Sequence record: NC_070966.1
Direction: 5' to 3' (one strand)
DNA: 64,000 bases
Numbering within the stretch: the first letter of the stretch is position 1; each line of letters begins with the position of its first letter. The notes below the pieces were generated by a model, which worked only from the letters and a program-made list of their open reading frames with translations, searched no databases and was not told where the DNA came from. This document shows positions 7,177-36,660 of the stretch, one piece after another. Position numbers and translations under genes: made by a program.

Positions 7177-7434
7177 ATGAGTAAAGCATCTGAAGTTATC
7201 AAGAAGCTGAATGAGACTAAACCTTCAGAAGATCTTCTGAAGAGCGAGGTCCAGGAAATTAAGCAGAAGATGATTAATCAAGGCATCGTCAGACCTGACT
7301 ATGCTGTTGAAAGATTTAGTCTGGTTAGTGATAGATTCAGAAATGTCTTGATACACGGTATTGTTCATGGAACAAATACTGCAGGATGGAGAGATCAGAT
7401 TAAAGATTTGAGATCTCAGAATTTGATTAGTTAG
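7177..7434 (+). CDS. hypothetical protein, MSKAS...NE N-terminal tag family
   Basis: N-terminus MSKASEVIKKLNE; its stop codon abuts tRNA-Gly. Confidence 0.7.
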   Translation: MSKASEVIKKLNETKPSEDLLKSEVQEIKQKMINQGIVRPDYAVERFSLVSDRFRNVLIHGIVHGTNTAGWRDQIKDLRSQNLIS

Positions 7435-7508
7435 CGGACGTAACTCAGAGGTAGAGTGCAATCCTTCCAAGTTTGAAGTCGTGGGTTCGATTCCCATCGT
7501 CCGCTCCA
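7434..7508 (+). tRNA. tRNA-Gly(TCC)
   Basis: GCGGACG/CGTCCGC-TCCA; loop CTTCCAA. Confidence 0.95.
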
Positions 7509-7509
7509 T

Positions 7510-7586
7510 GCATCCTTAGCTCAGTTGGTTAGAGCATCAGTTTTACATACTGAGGGTCACTAGTTCAAGTCTAGTAGGATGTACCA
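7510..7586 (+). tRNA. tRNA-Val(TAC)
   Basis: GCATCCT/AGGATGT-ACCA; loop TTTACAT. Confidence 0.95.
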
Positions 7587-7605
7587 GTTATATTAAACTA
7601 TTCGT

Positions 7606-7681
7606 GGGAGATTAGTTCAGTGGTTAGAACCGTCAGCTCATAACTGATTAAACAGAGGTTCGAATCCTCTATCTCCTACCA
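7606..7681 (+). tRNA. tRNA-Met or Ile2 (CAT)
   Basis: GGGAGAT/ATCTCCT-ACCA; loop CTCATAA; Met versus lysidine-Ile cannot be resolved by eye. Confidence 0.9.
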
Positions 7682-7684
7682 AGT

Positions 7685-7761
7685 ACCACCTTAACTCAGA
7701 TGGATAGAGTACTCGACCGATAATCGAGTTGTCATTGGTTCAAGTCCAATAGGTGGTACCA
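7685..7761 (+). tRNA. tRNA-Ile(GAT)
   Basis: ACCACCT/AGGTGGT-ACCA; loop CCGATAA. Confidence 0.93.
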
Positions 7762-7779
7762 ACTTTTATTGAGTAGATA

Positions 7780-8367
7780 ATGAAGTGCAGTTATTGTGAA
7801 ACTGAGTTTAGACATCTGAGTCGACATGTTAGATATTGTCCTCAGAATCCTGACAGAATTGTCAAGTTAAATCAGTTCTCTAAGGCTGAGTCATTAGGCT
7901 TACCTAAGCCGCCATTGTCTGAGAAATCTCGGAGAATGACTACTGAAAGAAATGCATCTCGAGTATGGACTCCAGAGATCAGATCTAAATTATCTAAGAG
8001 TATGATTAAGTACTTTAAAGATAATCCTGAAGCTCATCCGTACTTAAAGTATCATTCAAGTGGTGAATCATATGCTGAAGGATTCTTTCGAGAATTCTTT
8101 TTAAGTCATGATTTATCATTCAAACAAGAGTTGCAGGTTGGTCTCTATACACTTGACTTCGCATTTGAGGACAAGATGATTGATGTAGAGATCAACGGTA
8201 ACTTTCACTATAATAATCCTGGAATTGTTGAGAAAGATCAACGACGAAGACTCTTCTTGGAAGAGCGTGGATGGACTATTATAGAAGTTCGATGGTCTGA
8301 GTATAAGAAGATGAATGAGTCAGAGCGATCTGATTATCTGAATTCCTTATTATCTCAACTATCCTGA
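7780..8367 (+). CDS. free-standing putative homing endonuclease (zinc finger plus DUF559/Vsr-like domain)
   Basis: CSYC...H..YC; 'QVGLYTLDFAFEDKMIDVEINGNFH...DQRRRLFLEERGWTIIEV'. Confidence 0.8.
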   Translation: MKCSYCETEFRHLSRHVRYCPQNPDRIVKLNQFSKAESLGLPKPPLSEKSRRMTTERNASRVWTPEIRSKLSKSMIKYFKDNPEAHPYLKYHSSGESYAEGFFREFFLSHDLSFKQELQVGLYTLDFAFEDKMIDVEINGNFHYNNPGIVEKDQRRRLFLEERGWTIIEVRWSEYKKMNESERSDYLNSLLSQLS

Positions 8368-8443
8368 CGCGGGATGGCGCAGTCGGTAGCGCGCAAGAGT
8401 CATAATCTTGAGGTCGAGGATTCGAGTTCCTCTCCCGCAACCA
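8368..8443 (+). tRNA. tRNA-fMet-like (CAT)
   Basis: C1:A72 mismatch (CGCGGGA/TCCCGCA-ACCA); loop GTCATAA; anticodon stem CAAGA/TCTTG. Confidence 0.85.
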
Positions 8444-8449
8444 GTTTCA

Positions 8450-8640
8450 GTTAACGAGGCCACCGTATCTAGATTAATCTACCTCACAGGTATCTAGATC
8501 GTAGTGAGTTTGAGCGGAGCAGTCTTAACTGCATCGTTGTGGTCCCATCGATAATGCGGTCCTGAGATGGGATAGGACTCTATCTGAGTGCACAAGGATA
8601 GATGCACCTAAGCGGTCTCTGCGATGAGATCCACCGCTCC
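8450..8640 (+). ncRNA. candidate multibranch structured RNA
   Basis: GAGCGG(8512)/CCGCTC(8634) closes four hairpins (GCAGT/ACTGC, TCCCATC/GATGGGA, CTATCT/GGATAG, GGTCTC/GAGATC); upstream ATCTAGAT pair; no ORF. Confidence 0.5.
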
Positions 8641-8704
8641 ATAATCTGTAATCTTGATGTGAACAGTGTCGTAGATATCTCATCAGTAATATCGAGTTAA
8701 TGAG

Positions 8705-9205
8705 ATGATGTATATCCGATACGCTTTATACTTACCAGTTAATCTACTACTTGTACTGTCAGCATATGTGTTCTCACCTATTCTAGCAGCACTTTCTCTT
8801 GTCACCGGTCCTACGCTTCCTGGAGTACTTCAATGGTTCTCTACTACGGATGACGATTTAGATGGTGGAATTCATCAAAATGTCTCAGGTTATAAGTCTG
8901 GACTCAAAGGATTCTCACTATGGTGGCAACGTACATGTTGGATCTGCAGAAATCCTGCTCATGGGTGGCAGTCTAACTTACTAGGCATGTCTGTTGATGG
9001 ATTCGAATTTATCGAGAAGATCGATATTTCTACTCCTAAATGGTATCTGATGAAGAACAACAAGCATACGTTCTTCATGTGGAAGAAGGATCAACGTCTC
9101 TTCTCCAAGTACTATCTGAAACTATGGTTCGGATGGCTGAATACTGCATATGATGGTAAGAATCATCATTATGAATTTCAGATTGGATTGAAGAGTAAGA
9201 ATTAA
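8705..9205 (+). CDS. hypothetical membrane protein
   Basis: Hydrophobic N-terminal helix; Trp-rich 'WWQRTCWICRNPAHG'. Confidence 0.75.
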   Translation: MMYIRYALYLPVNLLLVLSAYVFSPILAALSLVTGPTLPGVLQWFSTTDDDLDGGIHQNVSGYKSGLKGFSLWWQRTCWICRNPAHGWQSNLLGMSVDGFEFIEKIDISTPKWYLMKNNKHTFFMWKKDQRLFSKYYLKLWFGWLNTAYDGKNHHYEFQIGLKSKN

Positions 9206-9206
9206 C

Positions 9207-9294
9207 GACCCTGTGACGGAGTGGTTGAACGTGCCGGTCTGCAAAATCGGTGGCATGAATTTGTCCGCGAGTTCGAATCTCGCTAGGGTCTCCA
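9207..9294 (+). tRNA. tRNA-Cys(GCA) with a long variable arm
   Basis: GACCCTG/TAGGGTC-TCCA (U73); arm CCGGT-CTGCAAA-ATCGG; 16-nt variable region containing GGCA/TGTC. Confidence 0.85.
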
Positions 9295-9304
9295 AGGTTA
9301 AACT

Positions 9305-9415
9305 ATGAAGTATGCAATCATTCTAGCACTTCTTCTAGCAGGATGTCAATCTGCTGAAGAGCGTTACTATTCAGATTTGTCTACAGGTGTAGGCATGGTT
9401 CTAAAGGATAAATAA
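9305..9415 (+). CDS. small lipoprotein (36 aa; not in the ORF track)
   Basis: MKYAIILALLLAGCQS: signal peptide with LAGC lipobox; SD 'aaggt' upstream. Confidence 0.65.
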   Translation: MKYAIILALLLAGCQSAEERYYSDLSTGVGMVLKDK

Positions 9416-9532
9416 ATGTCAACTATTATTGTTGCAGTTGTAGCATTCATTGCAGGTGGATACGCTAGTAAGAATTTTGGATTCGATCTAGTTGAGTATG
9501 CCAAGGCTGCTTATAACAAGTTTAAGGCATAA
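9416..9532 (+). CDS. small membrane protein (38 aa; not in the ORF track)
   Basis: [19 protein letters not shown]...; ATG immediately follows the previous TAA. Confidence 0.6.
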
Positions 9533-9541
9533 TGCCTTTGT

Positions 9542-9618
9542 CGGAGCGTAGCGCAGCCAGGTAGCGCAATAGTTTTGGGTACTATGGGTCGTCTGTTCGA
9601 ATCAGACCGTTCCGACCA
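9542..9618 (+). tRNA. tRNA-Pro(TGG)
   Basis: CGGAGCG/CGTTCCG-ACCA; loop TTTGGGT. Confidence 0.95.
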
Positions 9619-9620
9619 AT

Positions 9621-9697
9621 ATTCCCTTGGACAAGCGGTTTAAGTCATCTCACTTTCACTGAGAAGATCACGGGTTCAAATCCCGTAGGGAATACCA
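9621..9697 (+). tRNA. tRNA-Glu(TTC)
   Basis: ATTCCCT/AGGGAAT-ACCA; loop CTTTCAC. Confidence 0.93.
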
Positions 9698-9699
9698 AT

Positions 9700-9730
9700 T
9701 TCAGCGAAGTTAGGCTCTTGTAGCCTTCCT
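9700..9730 (+). promoter_or_regulatory. conserved intergenic motif, copy 3
   Basis: TTCAGCGAAG ttaggctcttg TAGCCTTCCT. Confidence 0.6.
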
Positions 9731-9795
9731 TCTTGTATCGGTTAGTAGTGTCAATCCGAGCTATTAATGTGAGTATTAAGTATCGGATTCTATGA

Positions 9796-9892
9796 TCGAG
9801 AGTGGTGGAACGGTAGACACATCCAGATAAAAGAGCAGTTTCTGGACGCTACTTAAATATGCGTGCTAGTTCAAGTCTAGCCTCTCGAACCA
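9796..9892 (+). tRNA. aberrant Leu-type tRNA with a 14-nt anticodon loop (no assignable anticodon)
   Basis: TCGAGAG/CTCTCGA-ACCA, Leu-like D arm and long variable arm, normal T arm; anticodon arm TCCAG-ATAAAAGAGCAGTT-CTGGA. Confidence 0.7.
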
Positions 9893-9926
9893 ATATTATA
9901 TGCTCATTCTTAGATAGGGATTACCA

Positions 9927-10688
9927 ATGGGTAAATTACATGAAATCCTCGCGGTTGAAGGTGACCTCGTAGGTGTAGCCAAGAAAGTTACTGAAGAAGC
10001 TATCGCTACGTTCAGCAAGCGTGCAGATCACTTCAGTGAGACTACTACTGAACAGAAATACTTTGCAGACGATGAGCAGCATCTCAATACGTCTGAATCT
10101 AAGGCAATGGTGACCACTGTACCTGACAAGCTCAAGTACATCGTTGATCCTATTGCTAAGTTCTTCGATGCGTACTATTCGAAGGAAGCTACCAATCAGA
10201 TCGCTAAGGCTGACGTAGAAGTCAAGGGTACAACGATCTTTGCAGATGTTCCAGCAACGGTTCTCCTAGGTATGGAGACTAAGCTTCGTGAACTCCGTAA
10301 GGTCTATGAATCGATTCCGACTCTCGCTCCTGGTGTATTCTGGGAGAAGGATGTTAATCGTCCGGCAGGTGTATACCGTGCTCGTGAACCTGAAGTCCGA
10401 TTCGTTACGAAGAAGACTGTACGTCCGATCACTCTTTCACCTGCTACTGACAAGCATCCTGCTCAGATTGAGAAGGTCAATGAAGATCTTCCTGTCGCTA
10501 AGAAGACGATTACTACCTGGAGTAGTATGATGTCGTCAGCTGACAAGAGCAAGGTCCTCGAACGTATCGATACTCTGATCCGTGCAGTTAAGACTGCTCG
10601 TCAGCGTGCAAACGGTACTGAGGCAGTATCTGCTTCATCCTTCGGTGATAAGATTTTCGACTTTATCCATCAAGGTATCGTCGACTAA
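9927..10688 (+). CDS. conserved-looking hypothetical protein (253 aa) followed by structured RNAs
   Basis: Strong ORF with SD; 'LSPATDKHPAQIEKV' and 'AVKTARQRAN' resemble a bacterial family I recall as DUF7873-like (unverified). Confidence 0.75.
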   Translation: MGKLHEILAVEGDLVGVAKKVTEEAIATFSKRADHFSETTTEQKYFADDEQHLNTSESKAMVTTVPDKLKYIVDPIAKFFDAYYSKEATNQIAKADVEVKGTTIFADVPATVLLGMETKLRELRKVYESIPTLAPGVFWEKDVNRPAGVYRAREPEVRFVTKKTVRPITLSPATDKHPAQIEKVNEDLPVAKKTITTWSSMMSSADKSKVLERIDTLIRAVKTARQRANGTEAVSASSFGDKIFDFIHQGIVD

Positions 10689-10736
10689 GAATTGAATGTT
10701 GAGGCTACCAGCATAGCCTCCATTCTCCGACTCCCA

Positions 10737-10826
10737 TAGGGACAAACTCAGCCTTAAACTTATTGTGAGTATCAAGAATTTATCTTCTGCTCAAGATAAA
10801 CAAACTAGCTTTGTATCCCTAAAACT
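10737..10826 (+). ncRNA. structured segment with four AAACT repeats
   Basis: TAGGGAC..AA/TTTGTATCCCTA closure; AAACT at 10744, 10756, 10802, 10822; inner TTTATCTT/AAGATAAA hairpin. Confidence 0.4.
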
Positions 10827-10847
10827 TAGACAAGATTTACCAGATCT

Positions 10848-10990
10848 AGTCGTAGCATATCTCTATTTTCCCGGAAGGTCGTGAGTTCGAGTCTCATCAC
10901 CGCACCCAATTACCTACAATTGGACTGATGCGGTGTAGCTCAGTGGTAGAGCGTTCGTTTTATCTTGAAGATATCCTATCGATGATGACT
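10848..10990 (+). ncRNA. divergent Y-RNA-like RNA with a circularly permuted tRNA module
   Basis: T arm GTGAG-TTCGAGT-CTCAT, then acceptor CACCGCA...TGCGGTG closed internally, then D arm TAGCTCAGTGGTAGAGC; outer ATATCT/AGATAT and AGTCGT/ATGACT stems. Confidence 0.7.
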
Positions 10991-11142
10991 GTATGAATCT
11001 ATCGTAACGATTAAATATGCTCCGCGATAGGAGTGTATGTTACATTAACAAGAACAGGGTGGTTCCATGCGGAATGTGGTTCCACCCACCTCTTCTTATA
11101 TAAGATCATTCGGATTTTATATAATAAGAATTTGAGGTTTAC

Positions 11143-11430
11143 ATGAGTAAGGCATCAAGATTACTTAGCAAGATCAATGAATTGGACGGTGGATCTAAGG
11201 ACCCACTGGTTCAATCAGGTTGTGCTAAGATTGTAGCTTATTGTCAGAAGAAGAGTCTTAGTGCTACTGAGATTGAGCAGATTAAGGATCAGATTCTTGA
11301 CGACGAGCCTCTTCACAATCATACTGCAGATACACTAGCTGCAATCGGTCTTGATATGAATATCAAGTCTGAGCTTGTAGCGATTGGTCTCAGTAGTGAT
11401 GAAGCTGATGCGATTATGAATGTAACCTAA
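11143..11430 (+). CDS. hypothetical protein, MSKAS...NE tag family
   Basis: MSKASRLLSKINE; SD 'gaggt'. Confidence 0.75.
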   Translation: MSKASRLLSKINELDGGSKDPLVQSGCAKIVAYCQKKSLSATEIEQIKDQILDDEPLHNHTADTLAAIGLDMNIKSELVAIGLSSDEADAIMNVT

Positions 11431-11437
11431 CAGACAT

Positions 11438-11511
11438 GCTCCTATAGTTAAGTGGTATAACTCCTGTTTTGTAATCAGGGTTCCTCAGTTCGATTCTGGG
11501 TGGGAGCACCA
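11438..11511 (+). tRNA. tRNA-Thr(TGT)
   Basis: GCTCCTA/TGGGAGC-ACCA; loop TTTGTAA. Confidence 0.92.
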
Positions 11512-11563
11512 TGATTTCTTGAATCCTAACTCATAGTGAGTTAGAGATAACAAGGAAGATAAA

Positions 11564-11860
11564 ATGAGTGATGAAGTTAATAAGACTGTCGTAACTAGAG
11601 AAGAACATCGAGGTACTGCTTGTAAGTACTATGATACTCGTGGTAAAGCATACGATGCTATTATCACTGAAGTATGGGGACCTCAATGCGTCAACCTTGT
11701 CTATGTCAATGATGTAGAAGGTCAGAAAGATTCTTATGGTCAGAAATTGATCAGATCATGTTCTGTGATGCATGGTAGTGTTCAGCAAGCTCATGGCAAC
11801 TATTGGATGTTACCAGGAGAGACTCGAGTTTCTAAATATGTTCATGATTCAGCTATTTAA
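11564..11860 (+). CDS. hypothetical protein
   Basis: SD 'aaggaag'; compact ORF. Confidence 0.75.
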   Translation: MSDEVNKTVVTREEHRGTACKYYDTRGKAYDAIITEVWGPQCVNLVYVNDVEGQKDSYGQKLIRSCSVMHGSVQQAHGNYWMLPGETRVSKYVHDSAI

Positions 11861-11925
11861 TTAACTTCTGTGATCTTCCGACCTTGACGCGACGAAGTAG
11901 CAGATAACTTATAAACTTTCTTGTT

Positions 11926-12513
11926 ATGTTTTATACTATCTATCGAATAACCAACAATGTTAACAGTAAGATATATGTTGGTATGCACCAGACTACTAAT
12001 TTAGATGACGGTTATATGGGATCGAGCAGATTATTGTTCAATGCTATGAAGAAGCACGGTCCTGATAACTTCTCTAAAGAGATTCTACATGTCTTTGATA
12101 ATAAAGAAGACATGTTTAGTATGGAAGCACAGATAGTAGACGAACAATTTGTTAAAAGATCTGATACATACAACCTAAAGACAGGTGGAGTAGGATCTTT
12201 TAGCTACATTAATTCATCTCCTGAATTTCGACAAAGGTCAATTTCAAGAATTCGTGAATTATGTAAGTCTGATACACCGTATCGTAGAATTCAATCTAAT
12301 AAATTGAAAGATGTTCGATACGATTTCACTGGTCATAAGCATACTGAAGAATCGATCTCTAAGATGAAAATATCTAAGGTCGGTCACGGAGAGGGTTCTT
12401 CGAATTCTCAGTATGGGACGATCTGGATTAATAATGGAGTGAAGAACTCTAAACTTAAATCTAATCTACCTATTCCAGATGGTTGGAGTAGAGGTAGAAA
12501 GATGGGCTTGTAG
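11926..12513 (+). CDS. GIY-YIG homing endonuclease (Seg-like, NUMOD3-type C-terminus)
   Basis: 'TIYRITNNVNSKIYVGMH...YMGS', 'TYNLKTGG', 'GHKHTEESISKM', 'NSQYGTIWINNG'. Confidence 0.9.
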   Translation: MFYTIYRITNNVNSKIYVGMHQTTNLDDGYMGSSRLLFNAMKKHGPDNFSKEILHVFDNKEDMFSMEAQIVDEQFVKRSDTYNLKTGGVGSFSYINSSPEFRQRSISRIRELCKSDTPYRRIQSNKLKDVRYDFTGHKHTEESISKMKISKVGHGEGSSNSQYGTIWINNGVKNSKLKSNLPIPDGWSRGRKMGL

Positions 12514-12578
12514 TGATAACGGGAGCACGATGCCTTTGCACGGCATAGGACAGGGTTCGATTCCCTGCTAGTCCACCA
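12504..12578 (+). tRNA. tRNA-Ala(TGC)
   Basis: GGGCTTG/CTAGTCC-ACCA with G3:U70; loop TTTGCAC. Confidence 0.93.
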
Positions 12579-12630
12579 CATTAGGTCGTATCAACCTGAG
12601 GTTAACCGTAGTTACTCAAACTGATACAAT

Positions 12631-12717
12631 GGGATTTCAGACGTGTTGGAGTGCGATCGGCAGACTGTAAATCTGTCCTCTTAGAGCTACTAGGTTCGAA
12701 TCCTAGAAGTCCCACCA
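12631..12717 (+). tRNA. tRNA-Tyr(GTA)
   Basis: GGGATTT/AAGTCCC-ACCA; loop CTGTAAA; long variable arm. Confidence 0.9.
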
Positions 12718-12722
12718 TATTT

Positions 12723-12764
12723 ATAGCCTCATATCGGAGCAATCTGGTATGAGGCTATTTCTTT
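12723..12764 (+). terminator. probable intrinsic terminator
   Basis: ATAGCCTCATATCGGA-GCAA-TCTGGTATGAGGCTAT followed by TTCTTT. Confidence 0.7.
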
Positions 12765-12838
12765 CATGTTAAAGAGAGGGGCGATGTATTATGATCGTTA
12801 CGACATCTTCTAGGTAAAACAACCTAGGAGTATAAAGC

Positions 12839-13141
12839 ATGAAGTCGCATTATATTAAGTCTGAGAAGTTTCGTTGGAATCGAGACGATAAGATCGAATA
12901 TATTTACAAGCTCAGAGCTGGTAATTATTACCGTGATCTTAAGACCTTTCAGGAGATCTCTGCGAATGAGTTCGTTAAGTTTGATCCTGACTGTATCGAG
13001 TATAAGATTCCTCCTCGTTATGGACGACTTAATCATTACTTGAACAAGTGGAATCTTGAGAGATTTCCTTCTAAGTCTTATAAGAAGTCTTGGAAGTTTG
13101 CTCACAGATGCCGTAAGCAATGGATGATCAATCTTGAATAA
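12839..13141 (+). CDS. hypothetical basic protein
   Basis: SD 'aggag'; overlaps the next ORF. Confidence 0.7.
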   Translation: MKSHYIKSEKFRWNRDDKIEYIYKLRAGNYYRDLKTFQEISANEFVKFDPDCIEYKIPPRYGRLNHYLNKWNLERFPSKSYKKSWKFAHRCRKQWMINLE

Positions 13142-13319
13142 GATGACATTCGATGATTGGTGTGATCAGGTCGATACTGTAGCGAGTAAAGCTATGGGAG
13201 GACCTGAATCATACACTAAGGCCACTGGCAGAGAATGCTGGATGGATATGTATAACGATGGATTCACTCCTGAAGATGCATGGACTGAAGAGTCTTTATG
13301 TATTCAGGAGTCCCTTTAA
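13134..13319 (+). CDS. hypothetical protein
   Basis: Small acidic ORF overlapping the previous stop. Confidence 0.65.
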   Translation: MNKMTFDDWCDQVDTVASKAMGGPESYTKATGRECWMDMYNDGFTPEDAWTEESLCIQESL

Positions 13320-13337
13320 TTCTAGATGGATAAGTTA

Positions 13338-13481
13338 ATGAATTTTCTCGGTAAAATCTTTTCTGCAGATTCTAAGAAGCTGGATGACGCGAAGGCTCTT
13401 CTTGCAGAAGTAACTGCATCGAAGAATCGTATCATCAATAATGATCTTAAGGGTCGTATTGAGACTTTCTTGAGTGCATGA
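13338..13481 (+). CDS. small hypothetical protein (47 aa; not in the ORF track)
   Basis: MNFLGKIFSADSKKLDDAK...; 'ggataag' upstream. Confidence 0.55.
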   Translation: MNFLGKIFSADSKKLDDAKALLAEVTASKNRIINNDLKGRIETFLSA

Positions 13482-13520
13482 GATAGAAGGCTAAAAGACG
13501 CGAATTATTCGCCTAGATTG

Positions 13521-13548
13521 AGCGAACTTAGCGTCTGATAGCCTTCCT
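13521..13548 (+). promoter_or_regulatory. conserved intergenic motif, copy 4 (3' arm of a long hairpin at 13486-13546)
   Basis: AGCGAAC ttagcgtctga TAGCCTTCCT; inverted partner GAAGGCTA..AGACGC..TTCGC upstream. Confidence 0.55.
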
Positions 13549-13565
13549 TCTTTGTCAGACGGTGA

Positions 13566-13641
13566 TGGCTAGTAGCTCAGTTGGTAGAGCATTGCACTGT
13601 TAATGCGACGGTCGTAGGTTCGAGCCCTACCTAGTCAGCCA
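13566..13641 (+). tRNA. tRNA-Asn(GTT)
   Basis: TGGCTAG/CTAGTCA-GCCA; loop CTGTTAA. Confidence 0.95.
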
Positions 13642-13664
13642 GTCTGCTTATAAAGGATTCTTAG

Positions 13665-13871
13665 ATGGAACGTGTATATAGTTTAGTTTATGTTGCTATC
13701 ATTACAGCAGGTGTAGTCGCAGGTATCACAGCACTCACTCTACCTTTGTACTATGGTACGATTGATAGTAATCGTAAACAATCTGAGTTGTCAAGTAAGT
13801 GTGTTGACTCAGGAGGGTCCTGGATCGTAGGTCCTAATGGATACTACCAGTGTATTGCTGGTCGTAAGTAA
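13665..13871 (+). CDS. small membrane-anchored protein
   Basis: N-terminal TM helix; C-terminal C..SGG.W......C motif. Confidence 0.7.
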   Translation: MERVYSLVYVAIITAGVVAGITALTLPLYYGTIDSNRKQSELSSKCVDSGGSWIVGPNGYYQCIAGRK

Positions 13872-13880
13872 TGTGAATAA

Positions 13881-13972
13881 GGATAGTTGGCTGAGTCTGG
13901 TCTAAGGCGCTCGACTTGAAATCGAGAGGACGTGAGAGCGTTCCGTGGGTTCGAATCCTACACTATCCGCCA
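13881..13972 (+). tRNA. tRNA-Ser(TGA)
   Basis: GGATAGT/ACTATCC-GCCA; loop CTTGAAA; long variable arm. Confidence 0.93.
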
Positions 13973-13990
13973 TATTTATTATTGAGTATA

Positions 13991-14377
13991 ATGGATCAAA
14001 TAGTAAAGAAAAAGAGGACTAGACGTCCTGTTTCTTTAGAGACTAGAATGAAATTATCTGCTGCTCTTAAGGGTAAACCTCAGAGTAAAGTTTCTAATGA
14101 AGAGATTTTTGCAGATAATACTACTCATCCTAGACATCGTATTAAAGAAAGAATAATTCGAGATAATCTTATTCCATACGAGTGTGCAATCTGTGAAAAT
14201 GATGGTACATGGAATGGTGAACCTTTATCTTTACATCTAGACCATGAAAATGGTAAGAATAATGATAATCGTCTTGAGAATCTTAGATTCTTATGTCCTA
14301 ACTGTCATAGTCAAACAGATACTTATGCAGGTAAGAATAAGAAACGTAAGAGAATCAAGAGAGAAGAGCGTGTTTAG
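13991..14377 (+). CDS. HNH homing endonuclease (start moved to 13991; the track start at 13916 lies inside tRNA-Ser)
   Basis: CAICEN...LSLHLDHENGKNNDNRLENLRFLCPNCHSQT. Confidence 0.88.
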   Translation: MDQIVKKKRTRRPVSLETRMKLSAALKGKPQSKVSNEEIFADNTTHPRHRIKERIIRDNLIPYECAICENDGTWNGEPLSLHLDHENGKNNDNRLENLRFLCPNCHSQTDTYAGKNKKRKRIKREERV

Positions 14378-14441
14378 TTCAATGGTAGAATGCGAGTCTC
14401 CAAAACTTGATATGAGAGTTCGATTCTCTCAGCACGTGCCA
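14368..14441 (+). tRNA. tRNA-Trp(CCA)
   Basis: GCGTGTT/AGCACGT-GCCA; loop CTCCAAA. Confidence 0.9.
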
Positions 14442-14477
14442 ATTCTAGATATTAAATAAACACTTGGATAAGAAGAA

Positions 14478-15122
14478 ATGTCAAAAGCAAGAGATTTACT
14501 TAATACCTTGAATGAAGCTGATGATTGGAATATTCACAAGAAAGAGTTGAAGAAGGCTGGATTTGATCTCCATCCTAATCATCACGCTAATGTGAATATC
14601 AATCGTAACAACTATCCTCAGAATCGTGATATCTATACGGGTAAAATGAGTAATGGTCATACGATGGTTATTACTCAATTAACTCCGATTGATATGGATC
14701 GATACGCATCTGTTAAGGATGCTTCTGGTAAATTTATCAAGCACTACTACGTAGCTCCTGTTAAACCTACACTGAGTAAAAGTCCTGTATTAAAGTCTAC
14801 AGCGATCGGTAATGATCCTAAGACAGTACTTGAAGAAATCAAAGCAGCTATGAGAATGGTTCCAGAAGGACGTCAGGCTACCTTTAGATCTGTTGAACAG
14901 AATGGTAAGTACTATGAGTTCGATGTCAGATACTGGGGAAGCTGGGAAGTTCCTGATGGTGAAGACGATGATGGAGACTACGACTTTGAAGTCTTGACAT
15001 CTAAATCGTCTAAGTCACTTCAGAACATTGTTGAGCCTATCATTAAGAAATATCCAAGTCTAGATATCTACTATCAAACTGGAGAGAAGAATTATATTAC
15101 TGTTCATGCTACTGTAAAGTAG
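14478..15122 (+). CDS. hypothetical protein, MSKA...NE tag family
   Basis: MSKARDLLNTLNE N-terminus. Confidence 0.8.
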   Translation: MSKARDLLNTLNEADDWNIHKKELKKAGFDLHPNHHANVNINRNNYPQNRDIYTGKMSNGHTMVITQLTPIDMDRYASVKDASGKFIKHYYVAPVKPTLSKSPVLKSTAIGNDPKTVLEEIKAAMRMVPEGRQATFRSVEQNGKYYEFDVRYWGSWEVPDGEDDDGDYDFEVLTSKSSKSLQNIVEPIIKKYPSLDIYYQTGEKNYITVHATVK

Positions 15123-15132
15123 TTGACAGTAT

Positions 15133-15217
15133 GTCGGTATGGCGGAATTGGTAGACGCCCTGGTTTTAGGTACCAGTGTCGAAAGACGTGTAGGTTCGAG
15201 TCCTATTACCGACACCA
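15133..15217 (+). tRNA. tRNA-Leu(TAG)
   Basis: GTCGGTA/TACCGAC-ACCA; loop TTTAGGT; long variable arm. Confidence 0.95.
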
Positions 15218-15223
15218 AATTAT

Positions 15224-15358
15224 GACTTGATGTTGCGAAAGAAATGGTTACTTCGTATTCCAAACGAGAAATGTAGGTATCGAATCCTGCTATCCTAATA
15301 GGATATCGTCTAAGATAGGACGCTAAAATTTCCATTTCTGACACTATCTCATCAAGTC
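15224..15358 (+). ncRNA. Y-RNA-like unit 1 (permuted tRNA-Gly-like module)
   Basis: GACTTGATG-TTGCGA...TATCT-CATCAAGTC; inner AGAAATGG/CCATTTCT; loop ATTCCAA, then T arm, TATCC-TAATA-GGATA, then D arm. Confidence 0.75.
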
Positions 15359-15366
15359 TCATATTC

Positions 15367-15449: not shown

Positions 15450-15459
15450 TTCAGTTTAT

Positions 15460-15604: not shown

Positions 15605-15613
15605 TCCTTATAA

Positions 15614-16040: not shown

Positions 16041-16049
16041 ACTTTTATA

Positions 16050-16184: not shown

Positions 16185-16195
16185 ATTACAATTCG

Positions 16196-29183: not shown

Positions 29184-29911
29184 GTCGAGCAAAATCACTG
29201 ATCGACATGATTAAAGGAACCAAGAACGAGTCTGGTGACGATGACGACGAAATCTCAAATCGTCGTCGTGGTGGTACTTGGATTGATCCTCATCATGTTG
29301 ACGCAGCATCCAAGAATCTGAAGCGTACTCAGTCATTCTACAAGAAGGCTAGTAATGCTAGCTCAGTTGAAGATCAAGAGTATTGGTTAGCTCGAGTCTT
29401 TAACAAGAATGCTGTTGCTAAGAGAATCTCCTCTGGATTCTATAACAAGGAAGCTAAGGCAGGAGTCGTAGGCGTCGATGACGTTGAAGATCTGTCAGCA
29501 TCTCTTGTTACAGGTAATCCAAGAGCATCGGGTCGTGTTACGACTAAGGATCACACACGTAATCCTGAAGAGATCTTTGCTGCTAACCAGATCGTTAAAG
29601 CTCTCTACGATACGATTGACAAGAAGTGGCCTGGACGTCCTCAGAACAAGATGGTTCTGACATACTTCCTCAAGGTCAATAAAGCTGATCATCTTATTAA
29701 CTTTAAGCTTCCATACGATGATCGTGTGGAAGAAATCATCTCTTCTATTGAGAAATATGCTAAAGACAATAACTCCAAGATTACTTGGACTACTCCTAAG
29801 CAGTTTCAGAATTTTTCAGGTATTGAAGACAGAATGTATGCAAAGGTCATGCAGTTCCTAGCAGATAATGCTGTAGAATTGGGTGCTCTTATCATTCGAG
29901 GTAAGAAATAA
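29180..29911 (+). CDS. hypothetical protein (MSRA tag; possible divergent sigma-like C-terminal half)
   Basis: MSRAKSLIDMIK..KNE; 'NPEEIFAANQIVKALYDTI...KMVLTYF'. Confidence 0.75.
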   Translation: MSRAKSLIDMIKGTKNESGDDDDEISNRRRGGTWIDPHHVDAASKNLKRTQSFYKKASNASSVEDQEYWLARVFNKNAVAKRISSGFYNKEAKAGVVGVDDVEDLSASLVTGNPRASGRVTTKDHTRNPEEIFAANQIVKALYDTIDKKWPGRPQNKMVLTYFLKVNKADHLINFKLPYDDRVEEIISSIEKYAKDNNSKITWTTPKQFQNFSGIEDRMYAKVMQFLADNAVELGALIIRGKK

Positions 29912-30353: not shown

Positions 30354-31010
30354 ATGGCTAGCGATAGACAGATGAAAGGTTACATCTGGGGAGAGCAAAT
30401 CCTGGATCATGCTCACATTGAGCATTATGCAAGGGCGATGAGATCCGATGATGTACGTACCGAGGAGTACTGGTACCAGGCAGTATTTCATGGGAAGAAC
30501 CACTCTAAGGTTCTTCAGTCGGAAGTCTTTCATAAGAAAATCCGCAACAACGTTACAAATAAAGTAGAAGTTGAGACTCTGGTTTCTACTTCTAACTCTG
30601 ACGTCGTTAATGATGTTCTAGCAGAGGAGAGAAAGAATGAAGTAAAATATTCTCGAGTTATCGAGGATGATAAGGTCGGTAATATGTCCGACTATCTTCC
30701 CGATGCAACTGTTGGGTTCTCAGTTATTATCAGAGAAATAGCTGACAAATGCAACGATGATGAAATCAAGGTCCTGAGCTACTTTGTATGTCAGGAACAT
30801 CTGGATAATATCCTATTCGAGGGGAATTCGATTCATTCATCAAACGATCGCTTCAATCGTACGATCCTAGGTATCTGGGAAAAGAATGTGAAGAGCATCA
30901 ATGATCTGAATCGATTTGTAGGTACTCGTGCTCGTGCTGATAAAGCTAGGTGGAGACTCTGCAATCTCTTGAAGAAGGAGTATCCTGAACTCTTGTCAGG
31001 AAAACGATGA
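30354..31010 (+). CDS. hypothetical protein (possible divergent sigma region-4-like C-terminus)
   Basis: SD 'agaggg'; 'IIREIADKCNDDEIKVLSYF...RARADKARWRLCNLL'. Confidence 0.75.
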   Translation: MASDRQMKGYIWGEQILDHAHIEHYARAMRSDDVRTEEYWYQAVFHGKNHSKVLQSEVFHKKIRNNVTNKVEVETLVSTSNSDVVNDVLAEERKNEVKYSRVIEDDKVGNMSDYLPDATVGFSVIIREIADKCNDDEIKVLSYFVCQEHLDNILFEGNSIHSSNDRFNRTILGIWEKNVKSINDLNRFVGTRARADKARWRLCNLLKKEYPELLSGKR

Positions 31011-31258: not shown

Positions 31259-34200
31259 ATGCAACTTTCTCTGAAGCCAGTCTCTCCAGAATCTGTACTC
31301 TTGACTTCACAAGGAGAGGTCAAGTCGTATGAGACTCTGAACTTCAAGACAGGTCTACCTGTTCGAGACGGTCTCTTGTGCCAGAAGGTATTCGGACCGA
31401 TTAGAGACTACGTATGTGAATGCGGCAAGTACGATGGTAAGAAATACCAGGGACATACTTGTGAGAAGTGCGGTGTTACGGTAGCGAGTTCACGTGCTCG
31501 TACTGTGAGAATGGGTCATATTGATCTTCAAGTTCCCATTCTTAATCCGTTGATGATCGAGTCGATCGAATCGATTATAGGTCTCCCATCCAGAAAGATG
31601 GAGGACTTTATGAAGAACAAGATCTGCCTGAAATTTTCAGCATCTGGTACAGGTAATCTTGTTCGTAAGGACGGTACACGAGGTATCGCGTATTTTGTAG
31701 ATCCTAAGGAATCTGATCCTCGATCTCCTACTCTGCAGCATACGAAGTCGTCTCTGGTTCTTTATGAACTCTTGACGGATCTCGATATTGAAGAGACGCT
31801 CAAAGTCAATGGATCCAAGATCCTGAAGACCTATGTGCAGAAGAACTTCCCTCTTTCTAATCTCTTCATTCGTTATCTACCGGTATCTCCAGCAGGATAC
31901 CGTCCAGTCACTCGTATGAGAAACTACTATTCTCAGCATCCCAAGAATGACCTTTATCAGAAGATCATTCGACGTACTCTGCGAGTGAAGGAACTGGTTA
32001 ATATCAATGCAGACTCAATGATTCTTCAGGAAGAGGCAGGCATTCTGTATAAGTCTGTCGATCAACTCTTCACTGGAGGAGCTCGAGATGGCGATGGGAA
32101 CCCTCTTCCTGGAACCATTGAGAAGATGATGGGTAAGAGAGGTATTCTCCGAGGAAATCTTCTCGGTAAGCGTACCGACTACTCTGGACGTTCAGTTATC
32201 ACTTCAGCAGGTGATCGTGTAGAAGTGGACCAGATTGGTCTACCTCGTAAGATGGCATACATCTTGTTTCGTCCTTTCATTCTCCGTTATCTGATGACGG
32301 AGTATCTGGATCATTATACTGAAGCACTGAAGCACTACGAGAAGAAGACTGTTATCGCACTGAAGTCTCTCGAGATGGTAGCTAAGGATTATCCGATCAT
32401 CATGAATCGTGCTCCTACGCTTCATAGATACGGTGTAATGTCTTTCCGTACCAAGTTGGTAAATGGTAAGGCTATCCTCGTTCATCCGATTGTATGTTCT
32501 CCATTCAATGCAGACTTCGACGGAGATACTGTAGCTATCCACTTGCCTCTTTCAGCTAAGTCTGTTCAGGAGTGCAAAGATTATCTCATGCCTCAGAACA
32601 ATCTCCTGTCTTCACTTGATGGTGATCCGATCATCAATATGTCGCACGAGATGGTTATCGGTCTTGCTATCATGTCTCGTATTAAGGATCATGATAAGGG
32701 ATTCGGTACATTCCGACGTATGGATGAGCTCGAGTATCTTCATACTGTCACCAATCCTCAGACTAGCCGTCCTACACTTGAGATCTACGATAGAATCAAG
32801 TGGAAAGATGAACGAGGAGTGACAGAGACGTGCTATGGTCGACTTCTTCTCGAGCAGACATTCAAGACCAAGAATCTTCCGAAGGACTTCTCTAAGAAGA
32901 CTATTCGTCGGATGATCAGTGATGCGTACGACAAGCTTGGACCTGATGAACTGATTAAGGTACTGGATGTAGCTACTCAGCTTTCATTCAAGTATGCTAC
33001 GAACTCTGGTTTCTCAGTTTCGATTGATGATTGTAAGGTACCTTCTACGAAACCTGCTAAGATTGCGAAAGCTAGAGAGCAGGAAGCTGAGAATTATCGT
33101 CAATTCGATAACAATGAAATCAATCTTGCAGAGCGTCGAGAGAACAATATTCGTCTCTGGAACGATGTCTTTGAAGATCTTCATCACGATTGGATGAAAG
33201 AAGCAGGTGAGGACAATCCGGTAGTTCTTATGTATACTACTGGTGCTCGTGTTAGTAAGTCTCAGGTCAATCAGATCGGAGTCGCTAAGGGTCTTGTATC
33301 CAATGCACTCAATCAGATCATCGAGAAGCCTATGGTTAACTCCTTCCGTGAAGGATTGTCGACGTTTGAGTACTTTGCATCTTGCTCTGGATCTCGTAAG
33401 TCCATGGCAGACAAGAAGAATCTGACTCCCAAGTCTGGTTATCTTACACGTCGAATGATTACTGCTAGCCGAGATTTCTTCATTAATTCAGATGATTGTG
33501 GTACCGATAAGGGTATCATGCGTACGATGAAGTCCTCGTATGGACGTTATCGTTGCGACAATGGTGAGATGATTGGTACGAACAATAGTGAAGAACTCGT
33601 TAAGGTTCGTAGTCCGATTCATTGTGAGTCGCATGGTGGTATCTGCGTTAAGTGCTACGGTATTGATCCTGCTAAGCGTAAGATCGTCACGAAGGGGTCC
33701 AACGTAGGAGCTATTGCAGCTCACTCGTTGACTGAATCTACAACTCAGATGACGATGCGTACCTTCCATACATCTGGTGCAGTCGTTCTGAAGGATAGTC
33801 CGATGGTCATTACTGCCCAGAAGGATGGTAAGATCAGCTGGGATACTCTTCATCCTGTCTACAGCAAGATTCATGTTGTTGCAGATATGGAAGATTGGGA
33901 TACACCTCTCAATGATCGATTGACGTATACAGTTCATAACAAGATGTCTCGCATTCTTGTTAAGGATGGTCAGTCTGTCAAGAAGGGTGATCCTCTAGCG
34001 ATCTACGTTGATGAAGATCTTGAGAGCGACGACGTCAGTGGATCGCTCCCTAAGATTGAATCTCTGTATGAAGGTCGAGTACCTCCGAAAGCGTACAAGT
34101 CAGTTATCTCGAAGGTAGCTGGTAAGATTGGTATTAACATCGGAGATGAAGGTCTTAAGATCTTCGTTGATGGTGAATACCAAGGTACTGCTCATCCTAA

Positions 34201-34642
34201 GACTCCGGTATTCGTTGCTCAAGGTCAGTATGTTGAAGCTGGTCAGACTCTCTCGTTTGGTTCTCCAGACGTAGTAGGTTTGTTCAAGGAGACAAAGGAT
34301 CTTGATCTCGCTTACAAGGTCTTTGAGAAGACTCTGATGGATATCTACAATAAGGAAGGTCTCCAGCCAGTACCAACTCATTCGGAGATGATCTTCAGAG
34401 CGATGTCTAATCTGGTATACACCGAGAGTGGTCCTTATGGTCTTCGATCCCATGGAGACAAGGGTAGCATTATGCTGAAGGGTATTACTCAGATTGGTGC
34501 GAATCATCCGTCCTGGTTGAAGTCAATCGGATTCGGATGGGTAGCTCAGACGATCAGAACTTCTGCTGTGAATCTTGCTACCACGTACGATCTTCCTACC
34601 GAACGTCTGATGTCTGGTGAATTGATTTACGAGGATAAATAA
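31259..34642 (+). CDS. rpoC: DNA-directed RNA polymerase beta' subunit (single polypeptide, phage-encoded)
   Basis: 'GLLCQKVFGP.RDYVCECGKY...CEKCGV', 'RMGHIDL', 'GNLLGKRTDYSGRSVI', NRAPTLHR, NADFDGD, 'TPKSGYLTRR', 'TQMTMRTFH'. Confidence 0.96.
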   Translation: MQLSLKPVSPESVLLTSQGEVKSYETLNFKTGLPVRDGLLCQKVFGPIRDYVCECGKYDGKKYQGHTCEKCGVTVASSRARTVRMGHIDLQVPILNPLMIESIESIIGLPSRKMEDFMKNKICLKFSASGTGNLVRKDGTRGIAYFVDPKESDPRSPTLQHTKSSLVLYELLTDLDIEETLKVNGSKILKTYVQKNFPLSNLFIRYLPVSPAGYRPVTRMRNYYSQHPKNDLYQKIIRRTLRVKELVNINADSMILQEEAGILYKSVDQLFTGGARDGDGNPLPGTIEKMMGKRGILRGNLLGKRTDYSGRSVITSAGDRVEVDQIGLPRKMAYILFRPFILRYLMTEYLDHYTEALKHYEKKTVIALKSLEMVAKDYPIIMNRAPTLHRYGVMSFRTKLVNGKAILVHPIVCSPFNADFDGDTVAIHLPLSAKSVQECKDYLMPQNNLLSSLDGDPIINMSHEMVIGLAIMSRIKDHDKGFGTFRRMDELEYLHTVTNPQTSRPTLEIYDRIKWKDERGVTETCYGRLLLEQTFKTKNLPKDFSKKTIRRMISDAYDKLGPDELIKVLDVATQLSFKYATNSGFSVSIDDCKVPSTKPAKIAKAREQEAENYRQFDNNEINLAERRENNIRLWNDVFEDLHHDWMKEAGEDNPVVLMYTTGARVSKSQVNQIGVAKGLVSNALNQIIEKPMVNSFREGLSTFEYFASCSGSRKSMADKKNLTPKSGYLTRRMITASRDFFINSDDCGTDKGIMRTMKSSYGRYRCDNGEMIGTNNSEELVKVRSPIHCESHGGICVKCYGIDPAKRKIVTKGSNVGAIAAHSLTESTTQMTMRTFHTSGAVVLKDSPMVITAQKDGKISWDTLHPVYSKIHVVADMEDWDTPLNDRLTYTVHNKMSRILVKDGQSVKKGDPLAIYVDEDLESDDVSGSLPKIESLYEGRVPPKAYKSVISKVAGKIGINIGDEGLKIFVDGEYQGTAHPKTPVFVAQGQYVEAGQTLSFGSPDVVGLFKETKDLDLAYKVFEKTLMDIYNKEGLQPVPTHSEMIFRAMSNLVYTESGPYGLRSHGDKGSIMLKGITQIGANHPSWLKSIGFGWVAQTIRTSAVNLATTYDLPTERLMSGELIYEDK

Positions 34643-34645
34643 AGG

Positions 34646-34843
34646 ATGCAAGACCTATCTCAACTATGTGAAGTTGAGATGGAGAAGTTAGTTGAAATAC
34701 TAATGAGATCGACTCACTTGACACTCGACGGTGTTGAGCTGAGTCGATCTCATGAATATCATAATAGCCCATCTGTCTCTACAATTAAAACTCATAAAGT
34801 CCTTGATGACTCATACATTACAGTTAGACTGAAATATGTATAA
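34646..34843 (+). CDS. hypothetical protein
   Basis: Short ORF tightly packed after rpoC. Confidence 0.55.
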   Translation: MQDLSQLCEVEMEKLVEILMRSTHLTLDGVELSRSHEYHNSPSVSTIKTHKVLDDSYITVRLKYV

Positions 34844-35549
34844 CTTGCAATACGATGATGGAATTCTTAAATCAAATAGGGAGTCTCTCGTAAACATACG
34901 AGCTCCATTCTTCAAACGGATTGATCGACGATCTCGCAAGTCGTCCATCGAGAGATTAATGATCTCACCTGATACAACAAGAAATTGTAGTCAGATTAAG
35001 AGATTTCTCGTTCCGTTCAACGATAAGTACTTGTACAGCATGCATGTGACTTATCGTGACGACTTAAAGTGTCAATCTATTTATGACACTAACAAGTCTC
35101 TCAAGCGAATCCTCCGATCTAAAATGTTAATGTCAGCTGTGAACAGGATAAATGAGTATCCTCAACTCAAAGCAGACATATTGTCTGTAATCAAGCTTGT
35201 AGTTAATTCTTGGGAGTTTGATGGTCTTATCACAGACATTGAATGGCTCCAGGATGAAAATCTACTGGATACTGTGATATCTAAGTGGAAACTGAAGAAG
35301 TACGAATCCTCTACAGAGCGAGGGTCAGTGATCAATCTCTTAATAAAGAGTTTTGATGGAGTTCCACTTAATCTTCTATCTCATCTAGAGATGAAGAAAA
35401 TCAGTATTGAGGATACTGACATTGAGGACGTTAAGTTTAAATGTCCTCTGATATTAATGCGATCGAATTCATCTTGTGCAGGATTCATATCTAAGTCCTT
35501 GGATAAAGGACTACCTGTGAGTCTGTTCAAGATTGATATAAAAGAGTAA
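34836..35549 (+). CDS. hypothetical protein
   Basis: Long ORF ending at a bidirectional terminator. Confidence 0.75.
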   Translation: MYNLQYDDGILKSNRESLVNIRAPFFKRIDRRSRKSSIERLMISPDTTRNCSQIKRFLVPFNDKYLYSMHVTYRDDLKCQSIYDTNKSLKRILRSKMLMSAVNRINEYPQLKADILSVIKLVVNSWEFDGLITDIEWLQDENLLDTVISKWKLKKYESSTERGSVINLLIKSFDGVPLNLLSHLEMKKISIEDTDIEDVKFKCPLILMRSNSSCAGFISKSLDKGLPVSLFKIDIKE

Positions 35550-35605
35550 AAATAAAGGCCACTAGGCGGACCCTTCTCGGAGGATTCACCTAGTGGCCTA
35601 TTTTT
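35550..35605. terminator. bidirectional intrinsic terminator at the strand switch
   Basis: AGGCCACTAGG...CCTAGTGGCCT with an A-run before and a T-run after, between convergent genes. Confidence 0.8.
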
Positions 35606-35610
35606 GTGTC

Positions 35611-35865
35611 TTATGGAAGAAGTGGTACGAAACTCTTCAGCTTATTGTACACATCATCCTGCTTACCCATTTCAGTCGAATACTTATCAAGAATCGTCTG
35701 ATTATCTGGGAATTCATTACCTTGATTAGCTACCCAGTCGACATAATCATGCCAATCCTGGTCATCGTGAAGATCACGATGCTGCTTAATCAGATTTGCA
35801 TATTCAGCATCTGTGAATTCATGCAATGATGAAAGCTTCTCAAGAATGTCTTTAGCTCTACTCAT
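35611..35865 (-). CDS. hypothetical protein, MSRA tag family (second Met chosen)
   Basis: MSRAKDILEKLSSLHE. Confidence 0.7.
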   Translation of the reverse strand: MSRAKDILEKLSSLHEFTDAEYANLIKQHRDLHDDQDWHDYVDWVANQGNEFPDNQTILDKYSTEMGKQDDVYNKLKSFVPLLP

Positions 35866-35876
35866 ATTAATCTCCG

Positions 35877-36332
35877 TCAAGCTACTACAGCGAGTTCATT
35901 ACTTGGTACTTCATGAACGTCACCATCGACTTCGATCATGCAGATTTCACCGTTCACTTTAAGAACAGTGCCTGTACCGTGAACTGATTCAACAGTGTTA
36001 TTAAGAAGGATCTCACGACCATTCTTATCTTCGCATTCGATGAATGCTCTCTGACCATTGTCAGGAGTGTAATCAGGAGCTTTACCTGTTACGCCATCTG
36101 CATTCACATTGTTCCAGTGACCGTATGCGTCAAAGTATAGTACGTCGAGATCCGAACTATCTTGGAACTTGTCACGTTCAGCCATAGCATCCTTGAAAGG
36201 CATTGCTAGAGGACCTAGGATAACTTTATTGTTGGTACGATTAACAATGTACGTACCAATGCGTTTACTGGTATCTTCGTCGATACCTGTGATCTTTGAC
36301 AGATCACTAATCAGACCTGATGCTCTGCTCAT
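35877..36332 (-). CDS. hypothetical protein, MSRA tag family
   Basis: MSRASGLISDLSKI. Confidence 0.75.
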   Translation of the reverse strand: MSRASGLISDLSKITGIDEDTSKRIGTYIVNRTNNKVILGPLAMPFKDAMAERDKFQDSSDLDVLYFDAYGHWNNVNADGVTGKAPDYTPDNGQRAFIECEDKNGREILLNNTVESVHGTGTVLKVNGEICMIEVDGDVHEVPSNELAVVA

Positions 36333-36360
36333 ATTAAATATCCTTGTTAGCGTTTATGAC

Positions 36361-36660
36361 TTAGAGACCAGCAGCCTTGCGCTTTCTCATAGTCATTTGA
36401 CGCTTACGAGAGATAGCAGCTTGCTGTCCTCTCTTCTTACGAGCACCCATCTTCGCAGCCTTACGCTTAGCGATGATCTCACCGGCACTCATCTTGACGC
36501 AAGTCTTACCATCAATCTTGTAACCTGGAGGGCAATCAAGAATAACACTCTTGGCTCCACCTCTGAATGTTACTTTCTTCTTAGGAGCAGCTTCACTAGC
36601 TGGAATAGAAGACTCATAGTAAGCATCAATTTTAGTGATCAAATCTGCAGATTTAGACAT
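36361..36660 (-). CDS. putative prohead core protein (T4 gp68-like)
   Basis: Highly basic C-terminus 'KRKAAKMGARKKR...RKRQMTMRKRKAAGL' resembling T4-type gp68; N-terminus MSKSADLITKIDAYYE. Confidence 0.6.
   Translation of the reverse strand: MSKSADLITKIDAYYESSIPASEAAPKKKVTFRGGAKSVILDCPPGYKIDGKTCVKMSAGEIIAKRKAAKMGARKKRGQQAAISRKRQMTMRKRKAAGL

Follow-up and report, generated by a model that had tools for sequence, protein, structure and literature searches.

In bacteriophage T4, the unrelated proteins IPI, IPII, IPIII and Alt carry a common short leader, the capsid-targeting sequence (CTS), which is removed by the protease gp21. In IPIII the CTS comprises the first 10 residues (PMC3012670), of which residues 4 and 7 serve targeting and residues 8 and 10 processing (PMC9026906; PMC3012670), and gp21 substrates are cut after L/I-x-E (PMC9026906). 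Many head proteins of the giant phages phiKZ, 201phi2-1 and SPN3US are cut after Glu as well, with propeptides that have been proposed to target the prohead, and in phages of this type diverged paralogues can keep conserved N-termini (PMC5694885). Here, we describe a tag of about 13 residues that starts otherwise unrelated small proteins of Rhizobium phage RHph_TM30 (TM30; NC_070966.1), a jumbo phage with a genome of 207,623 bp that belongs to the genus Cuauhnahuacvirus in the one-genus family Kleczkowskaviridae. The stretch under study, called the window, spans 64,000 nucleotides and corresponds to bases 124001-188000 of the record. An earlier note on the window had listed seven open reading frames (ORFs) with such a tag and had proposed that it is a T4-like propeptide.

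As in T4, the TM30 tag is a short leader common to unrelated proteins of one phage. Both phages have a protease of the S77 gp21 family, and the TM30 leader appears to close with Glu as that of T4 does, for the most part within L/I-x-E. Some TM30 bearers lie beside or inside a tRNA cluster near putative homing endonucleases, much as T4 ipI, ipII and ipIII flank a tRNA island, and the (putative) cargo varies between close relatives in both cases. The TM30 sequence is, however, unrelated to that of T4 (MS(K/R)AxxLLxxLxE versus MKTYQEFIAE) and longer (13-20 versus 10 residues); there are 10-12 bearers instead of about four, and the TM30 scaffold is fused to the protease. The propeptides of the phiKZ-type phages, which are distant from TM30, differ in being mostly longer than 100 residues and in having no single common short tag, and their protease motif, S/A/G-x-E, has a small P3 residue instead of a hydrophobic one. 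While the CTS of T4 has been proven experimentally, the TM30 tag is known from sequence alone. Our analysis indicates that this tag, M-S-(K/R)-(A/S)-x-(E/D)-(L/I/V)-(L/I)-x-x-(L/I/V)-..-E, is probably a capsid-targeting propeptide.

All seven ORFs listed in the earlier note are present with the N-termini quoted there, the positions given for those on the minus strand being their start codons. The genome-wide motif count that the note had suggested was carried out on the whole TM30 genome, rebuilt from the public record. The strict pattern M-S-(K/R)-(A/S)-x-x-(L/I/V)-(L/I)-x-x-(L/I/V), applied to ATG-started ORFs, identified ten bearers, and two loose ones were added (Table 1). By chance, 0.02 strict tags per genome would be expected, as calculated from how often each residue occurs at each N-terminal position in the remaining ~354 genes. 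A looser pattern matched 11 of 2,111 ATG starts, every one of them belonging to a bearer ORF (no false matches), and the motif without its Met had only about ten further occurrences in 113,000 residues of open frame. The bearers measure 56-243 amino acids (aa), and the isoelectric points of their bodies range from 4.1 to 10.9. As the note had also stated, the sequences diverge after the tag: past residue 20, the bodies of the twelve bearers show no mutual BLAST similarity. Pfam recognised no domains on the TM30 bearers, nor on ten larger tagged proteins of relatives.

The tags match at the protein level, since Ser2 is encoded by AGT, AGC, TCA, TCT and TCG, and thus by both Ser codon families, and since the 45 nucleotides upstream of the tagged starts are dissimilar to each other. 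Five codons are used for Lys/Arg3, and five for the leucines of the tag. At least 99% identity to TM30 over the tested stretch was found by megablast in seven other records (six phages), while RHph_Y65 (Y65; two records) is ~98.5% identical. Between the gp356 alleles of TM30 (MSKASRLLSKINE) and Y65 (MSKASDLLSRIHE), L7 and I11 are kept via synonymous changes, and the substitutions fall at unconstrained tag positions. It could be argued that the first codons are selected for translation initiation or regulation at the mRNA level and not for the peptide they encode, as highly expressed genes often have MSK-type starts and Ser is the commonest second residue in TM30 (72 of 365 genes). With such codon usage, differing upstream regions and hydrophobic residues 7, 8 and 11 conserved through synonymous changes, we regard this explanation as extremely improbable.

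Among cultured phages no relatives of intermediate distance were found, and an IMG/VR protein search with the RNA polymerase beta' gene of TM30 returned no relatives either. Metagenomic data contained 76 protease-scaffold fusions with 31-57% identity to the TM30 protein gp281 over most of their length, and a profile search retrieved 42 IMG/VR loci with head modules that are syntenic with that of TM30. The tag pattern at the DNA level matched 14, 9, 8, 7 and 1 times in five IMG/VR records of relatives, the records with 9, 8 and 7 matches being 100% complete, that with 14 matches 53% and that with one match 30%. All matches were on the protease strand, and a reversed-pattern control gave 0. In the relatives L020 (42% protease identity), L026, L027 and L048 (35-37%), five to eight strict tags are located at most 21 kb from the portal, protease and capsid genes, always on the strand of these genes. 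Within 21 kb, L026 has eight strict tags and L027 and L048 have five each, which are found in the terminase-portal interval, on both sides of the protease gene and past the neck gene. In L020, six small genes in a row have MSK(A/V)(D/Q)x(I/V)L starts and unrelated bodies. Some tagged genes of the relatives are clustered far from the head module, as is seen in TM30.

Individual bearers can be followed across this clade. Relatives at 41-47% protease identity have gp285 orthologues (E = 1e-6 to 1e-16 for the body) that start with MTRASAFLSKIYE, MSISANLLTRIKK and MINAKRLLKLVED, in which positions 4, 7, 8 and 11 are kept, and the gp285 slot of the syntenic, cultured coliphage IME392 holds MVTAAEVLSSVDE. 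Word-index searches with gp351 and gp329 gave only TM30, Y65 and one 66% orthologue; the gp329 orthologue with 66% identity starts with MSKSKTLIDKIDNYYE and has the tag. Conversely, gp284 of TM30 lacks the tag, while its orthologues are tagged in three relatives, including L020. The consensus from 40 tags reads M-S-(K/R)-A-x-(E/D)-(L/I/V)-(L/I)-x-x-(I/L)-E, and in many relatives the tag ends with L-I-E, a canonical gp21-type site. The tag is a real protein-level signal under selection, common to unrelated proteins and kept across a deep clade.

Common descent, whereby fast-diverging paralogues would have retained their first helix as a relic without a shared signal function, would be in line with the small size of many bearers (56-151 aa) and with their tandem arrays in relatives. 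Three observations make this very unlikely. Firstly, the bodies are not only mutually dissimilar, but include separate families, namely the gp68-like protein, the gp285 family and the gp351 domain. Secondly, the tag is nearly invariant across relatives at 30-57% protease identity whose bearer bodies are unalignable. Thirdly, the tag is gained or lost by orthologues, as exemplified by gp284 and by the pair of tagged gp338 and untagged gp336, which also argues for a propeptide. The weak paralogy between the latter two (E = 6e-5 over 55 aa) is the sole BLAST link involving any bearer body. The alignment begins at residue 54 of gp338, whose N-terminus is longer by ~29 residues that comprise the tag and a linker. 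The protein gp338 therefore resembles a body of the gp336 type to which a tag and an acidic linker were added.

Two leader types were seen side by side in L048 (IMGVR_UViG_3300033143_007105, 1316-17039), where five genes carry MSKA(T/R)E(I/L)LEKI and about nine more carry x(T/S)(K)(A/E)(Q/E)ML(D/K)FLxE.

A candidate protease for leader removal is encoded in TM30. The protease-scaffold fusion gp281 (503 aa) matches Peptidase_S77 (PF03420), the T4 gp21 family, with residues 41-184 (34.7 bits versus a cut-off of 27 bits), its C-terminal half is a coiled-coil, and its original GenBank name is prohead core scaffolding and protease protein. The major capsid protein matches PF07068, the Gp23 family. 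As to a possible cut site, a Glu is present within residues 11-20 of all 12 tags, compared to 44% of the other TM30 genes, and (L/I/V/M/F)-x-E occurs within these residues in 8 of 12 tags versus 69 of 354 other genes (19.5%; Fisher p = 7e-4). Examples of the latter motif are KLNE, KINE, TLNE, SLHE, GIDE, TLTE, AIVE and RLSE. A conserved (I/A/T)-L-E before S/H at residues ~31-35 of the capsid protein could be a maturation site, but its P3/P2 pattern is unlike that of the tags. An N-terminal amphipathic anchor that targets envelope-acting proteins to the membrane or for export would agree with the N-terminal place of the tag and its hydrophobic residues 7, 8 and 11. The tag nevertheless lacks a hydrophobic core of signal-peptide length, has charges at positions 3 and 6 and an acidic end, and precedes soluble, often very acidic bodies, so that such an anchor is highly improbable.

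In the scaffold half of gp281, residues ~283-400 contain six repeats of the form Y-x-x-(L/F)-G-x-(P)-E-(E/D)-(L/I), such as YKEFGTPEELTEAF and YKDLGSPDELSGML, which are conserved in relatives. These repeats could be docking or cleavage sites.

Two bearers have a direct relation to head assembly, as gp285 is encoded in the head-neck module and gp329 is a core protein of the gp68 family; both facts favour a propeptide. Residues 23-99 of gp329 match phrog_3503, 'head scaffolding protein' (E = 3e-12), and its tblastn matches are 'head scaffolding protein' genes of (Ackermannviridae-like) Vibrio phages. In the Vibrio phage, the homologue is located between the portal and protease genes, which is the gp67/68 slot of T4, and the basic C-terminal tail of gp329 resembles that of T4 gp68 as judged by eye. 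The position of gp329 itself is not canonical, ~40 kb from the protease gene and the head cluster; the slot is, however, typical of the gp68 family and does not define it. Since the Vibrio homologue and T4 gp68 have N-termini other than the tag, the tag is a property of the TM30 lineage and not of the gp68 family.

A further line of evidence came from one putative cargo family. The C-terminal domain of gp351 is a widespread alpha/beta domain with the motif R-(D/Y)-W-G-x-W-E..P-D and the invariant residues R151, G154, W156, D167, D169 and K204, and AlphaFold2 modelled it as a small alpha/beta fold with a predicted local distance difference test (pLDDT) score >90. No relative was found in the PDB by sequence or by fold, the best Foldseek matches being designed proteins (E ~7e-3), and a BFVD fold search yielded only uncharacterised proteins. 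In cultured phages, tblastn with gp351 and two homologues detected the TM30 group only, and T4 has no copy of the domain. A full HMMER search (E <= 1e-3) resulted in 241 homologues, all of which match the C-terminal domain only. Of the 143 Met-started homologues, 82 have a leader ending in (L/I/F/M/V)-x-E within 14 residues, versus 70 of 344 genes in the TM30 background (p = 4e-15). The leaders form classes, specifically MRYxEIINEA, MKTLQxLLEMAKR, MKxxELFE, MIKLKRLSALINE and MKTFKEFLTEA/MKTFKEMLTE, and the last of these nearly equals the leaders MKTYQEFIAE (IPII, IPIII) and MKTFKEF (IPI) in the T4 record. On a 1.7-kb contig, a gp351 homologue belongs to a row of four adjacent genes, each of which begins with (M)KT(F/L)KEFL(N/T/Q)E, and on another contig the neighbours of a homologue begin with MITFKQFLE, MITFKQYIKE and MNFKLFLE. 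In one case, a homologue follows a portal protein as part of a fusion. Because the homologues carry lineage-specific leaders, with one class that is nearly the T4 CTS, the same cargo domain is preceded in different phages by each phage's own leader.

The gp351 proteins of TM30 and Y65 share 80% identity, whereas their neighbours share 97-100%. Synonymous divergence (dS) between the two alleles is 1.2 with a ratio of nonsynonymous to synonymous divergence (dN/dS) of 0.12, which indicates that gp351 is a genuine gene and that its allele is old. Even so, the DNA is identical over the 40 nucleotides upstream of the gene and over its first 12 codons, with diverged sequence on both flanks (window 14437-15122 versus L006:17610-18295); ~4 synonymous differences would be expected in these codons as estimated from dS. 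This mosaic, a single case, resembles the joint that recombination at the leader would leave. We tentatively consider a broader scheme, which is possible but far from assured: the tag would be a packaging code, portable and in use across the clade, by which 7-14 cargo proteins are loaded per complete genome, and cargo domains would cross lineages by swapping leaders (MS(K/R)AxxLL.., MRYxEIINEA, MKTFKEFLxEA and MKxxQxLLEMAKR) through recombination at the leader-coding DNA.

The most serious competitor of a capsid-targeting role is that the tag docks, as a helix, to a different common partner. This could be a chaperone, a host factor, a neck or portal protein or the RNA polymerase of the phage, and the tag would then remain uncut and the bearers would reside outside the capsid. 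Amphipathic helices serve in interactions of many kinds, AlphaFold2 predicted a helix at residues 3-13 of gp351 with low confidence, and many bearers are encoded outside the structural block in TM30 and its relatives. Set against this are the enrichment of Glu and (L/I/V)-x-E at the end of the tag, the tag on a gp68-family core protein, the density of tagged genes amid the terminase, portal, protease and capsid genes of relatives, and the T4-type CTS leaders of gp351 homologues. We consequently judge another partner unlikely.

The idea of a T4-like propeptide, as put forward in the earlier note, fits the S77 protease, the gp68-like bearer, the Glu-rich tag ends, the clade-wide tags in head modules and the leaders of gp351 homologues. 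Four steps are inferred, i.e. docking to the scaffold, cleavage by gp281 at the tag Glu, residence in the virion and ejection into the host. The tag would form a short helix that is amphipathic, residues 4, 7, 8 and 11 sharing a face, and this helix would dock its bearer onto the prohead core during assembly, most plausibly onto the scaffold half of gp281. The other half of this fusion, a serine protease of the gp21 type, would then cut behind the closing Glu of the tag (residues 13-20), by which the mature cargo would be freed inside the head, and some of the cargo would exit with the DNA at infection.

Several points weigh against a capsid-targeting propeptide. Four of the 12 tags have no canonical hydrophobic P3 (K-N-E, Y-Y-E, T-H-E and S-D-E), and the (L/I/V/M/F)-x-E motif that was scored is of the T4 gp21 type and may not be that of gp281. 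Several bearers are located among genes of early or middle type, in the tRNA island and beside the DNA polymerase gene, and a search for late promoters revealed no motif that marked a class: ATTAAATAAAC occurs solely upstream of gp351 and gp329, and TATAATAAG upstream of gp356 and gp283 as well as in other places. The gp68-like core protein of TM30 shares the tag with the cargo, whereas T4 gp68 has no IP leader. Lastly, the literature that was searched contained no virion proteome for TM30, Y65 or their relatives.

The analysis yields a testable list of 10-12 candidate head-packaged proteins for the unstudied Kleczkowskaviridae. It also supplies the leader consensus of a large clade, uncultured for the most part, to which coliphage IME392 belongs. 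If the tag is a propeptide, its 13 residues would be a tool, like the CTS in T4, for loading the heads of Rhizobium phages with foreign proteins, and the gp351-type domain would be a widespread cargo deserving study. For many phages, capsid-targeting codes could be charted by moving from one cargo family to the leaders that it has in each lineage. Should leaders indeed be swapped, then the leader of each lineage and its head-delivered repertoire, probably for host takeover or anti-defence, would be readable from sequence alone.

Table 1. Tagged genes of TM30 and other features mentioned in the text (window positions unless marked as record positions; a loose bearer has no position given).
Feature	Position	Strand	N-terminal tag	Residue after tag	Remarks
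Unnamed ORF	7177-7434	+	MSKASEVIKKLNE	T	85 aa; between tRNA-Gln and tRNA-Gly; not annotated in RefSeq
gp356	11143-11430	+	MSKASRLLSKINE	L	95 aa, acidic; tRNA island
gp351	14478-15122	+	MSKARDLLNTLNE	A	214 aa; tRNA island; cargo domain at residues ~110-214
gp338	29180-29911	+	MSRAKSLIDMIKGTKNE	S	243 aa, basic; tag followed by acidic linker
gp331	35611-35865	-	MSRAKDILEKLSSLHE	F	84 aa, acidic
gp330	35877-36332	-	MSRASGLISDLSKITGIDE	D	151 aa, acidic
gp329	36361-36660	-	MSKSADLITKIDAYYE	S	99 aa; record 160361-160660; gp68-like prohead core; basic C-terminal tail
gp202	record 75828-76097				strict bearer
gp213	record 82018-82188				strict bearer
gp285	record 197990-198307				strict bearer; head-neck module
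gp181			MSKVGDLLQNLSD		loose bearer
gp200			MNKANQVLKRLSE		loose bearer
gp336	30354-31010	+			untagged weak paralogue of gp338
gp281	record 200699-202210 (L002:32699-34210)	-			protease-scaffold fusion; scaffold half at residues ~205-503
ORF, GIY-YIG-like start	11926-12513	+			195 aa; not annotated in RefSeq
ORF, HNH-like motif	13916-14377	+			153 aa; not annotated in RefSeq; overlaps tRNA-Ser
gp350	16406-17974				TROVE (Ro60-like)
RNA polymerase beta'-like gene	31259-34642	+			1,127 aa; NADFDGD motif

RefSeq annotates six of the seven bearers in the window, gp329 as prohead core protein and the others as hypothetical. Of the three genes in the tRNA island that the earlier note had called hidden, this description holds for the unnamed ORF, which is identical in Y65, while the other two are annotated. 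The note had furthermore suggested that gp338, the start of which overlaps the 3' end of the DNA polymerase gene, might be a transcription factor. Neither Pfam nor PHROGs nor the ESM Atlas returned anything in favour of this suggestion, and the only link is its location near the RNA polymerase beta'-like gene. The latter is a single gene, placed between the gp338/gp336 paralogue pair and the tagged genes on the minus strand.

The two ORFs of the tRNA island without RefSeq annotation that have a GIY-YIG-like start and an HNH-like motif (HLDHENGKNNDNRLENLRFLCPNCH), respectively, look like homing endonucleases that are present in TM30 and missing from Y65. This reading is based on the flanking tRNAs, which are closer together in Y65: gp356 and tRNA-Ala are ~75 nucleotides apart, and tRNA-Ser and tRNA-Trp are adjacent.

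Upstream of the TROVE gene gp350 lies a 1.2-kb gap without an annotated gene (15218-16405), which contains a partial tRNA-like Rfam match (15945-16009, plus strand; 33.9 bits, model positions 6-65). This match may correspond to a YrlA/Y-RNA-like RNA that partners the Ro protein.

Finally, the sequence T(T)ATAATAAG(A/T)A is repeated in AT-rich intergenic DNA, including the regions upstream of gp356 and of gp283, which adjoins the capsid gene. It occurs at record positions 135120 (window 11120), 199222, 67506, 107943, 207456 and 207614, and may be a promoter element.

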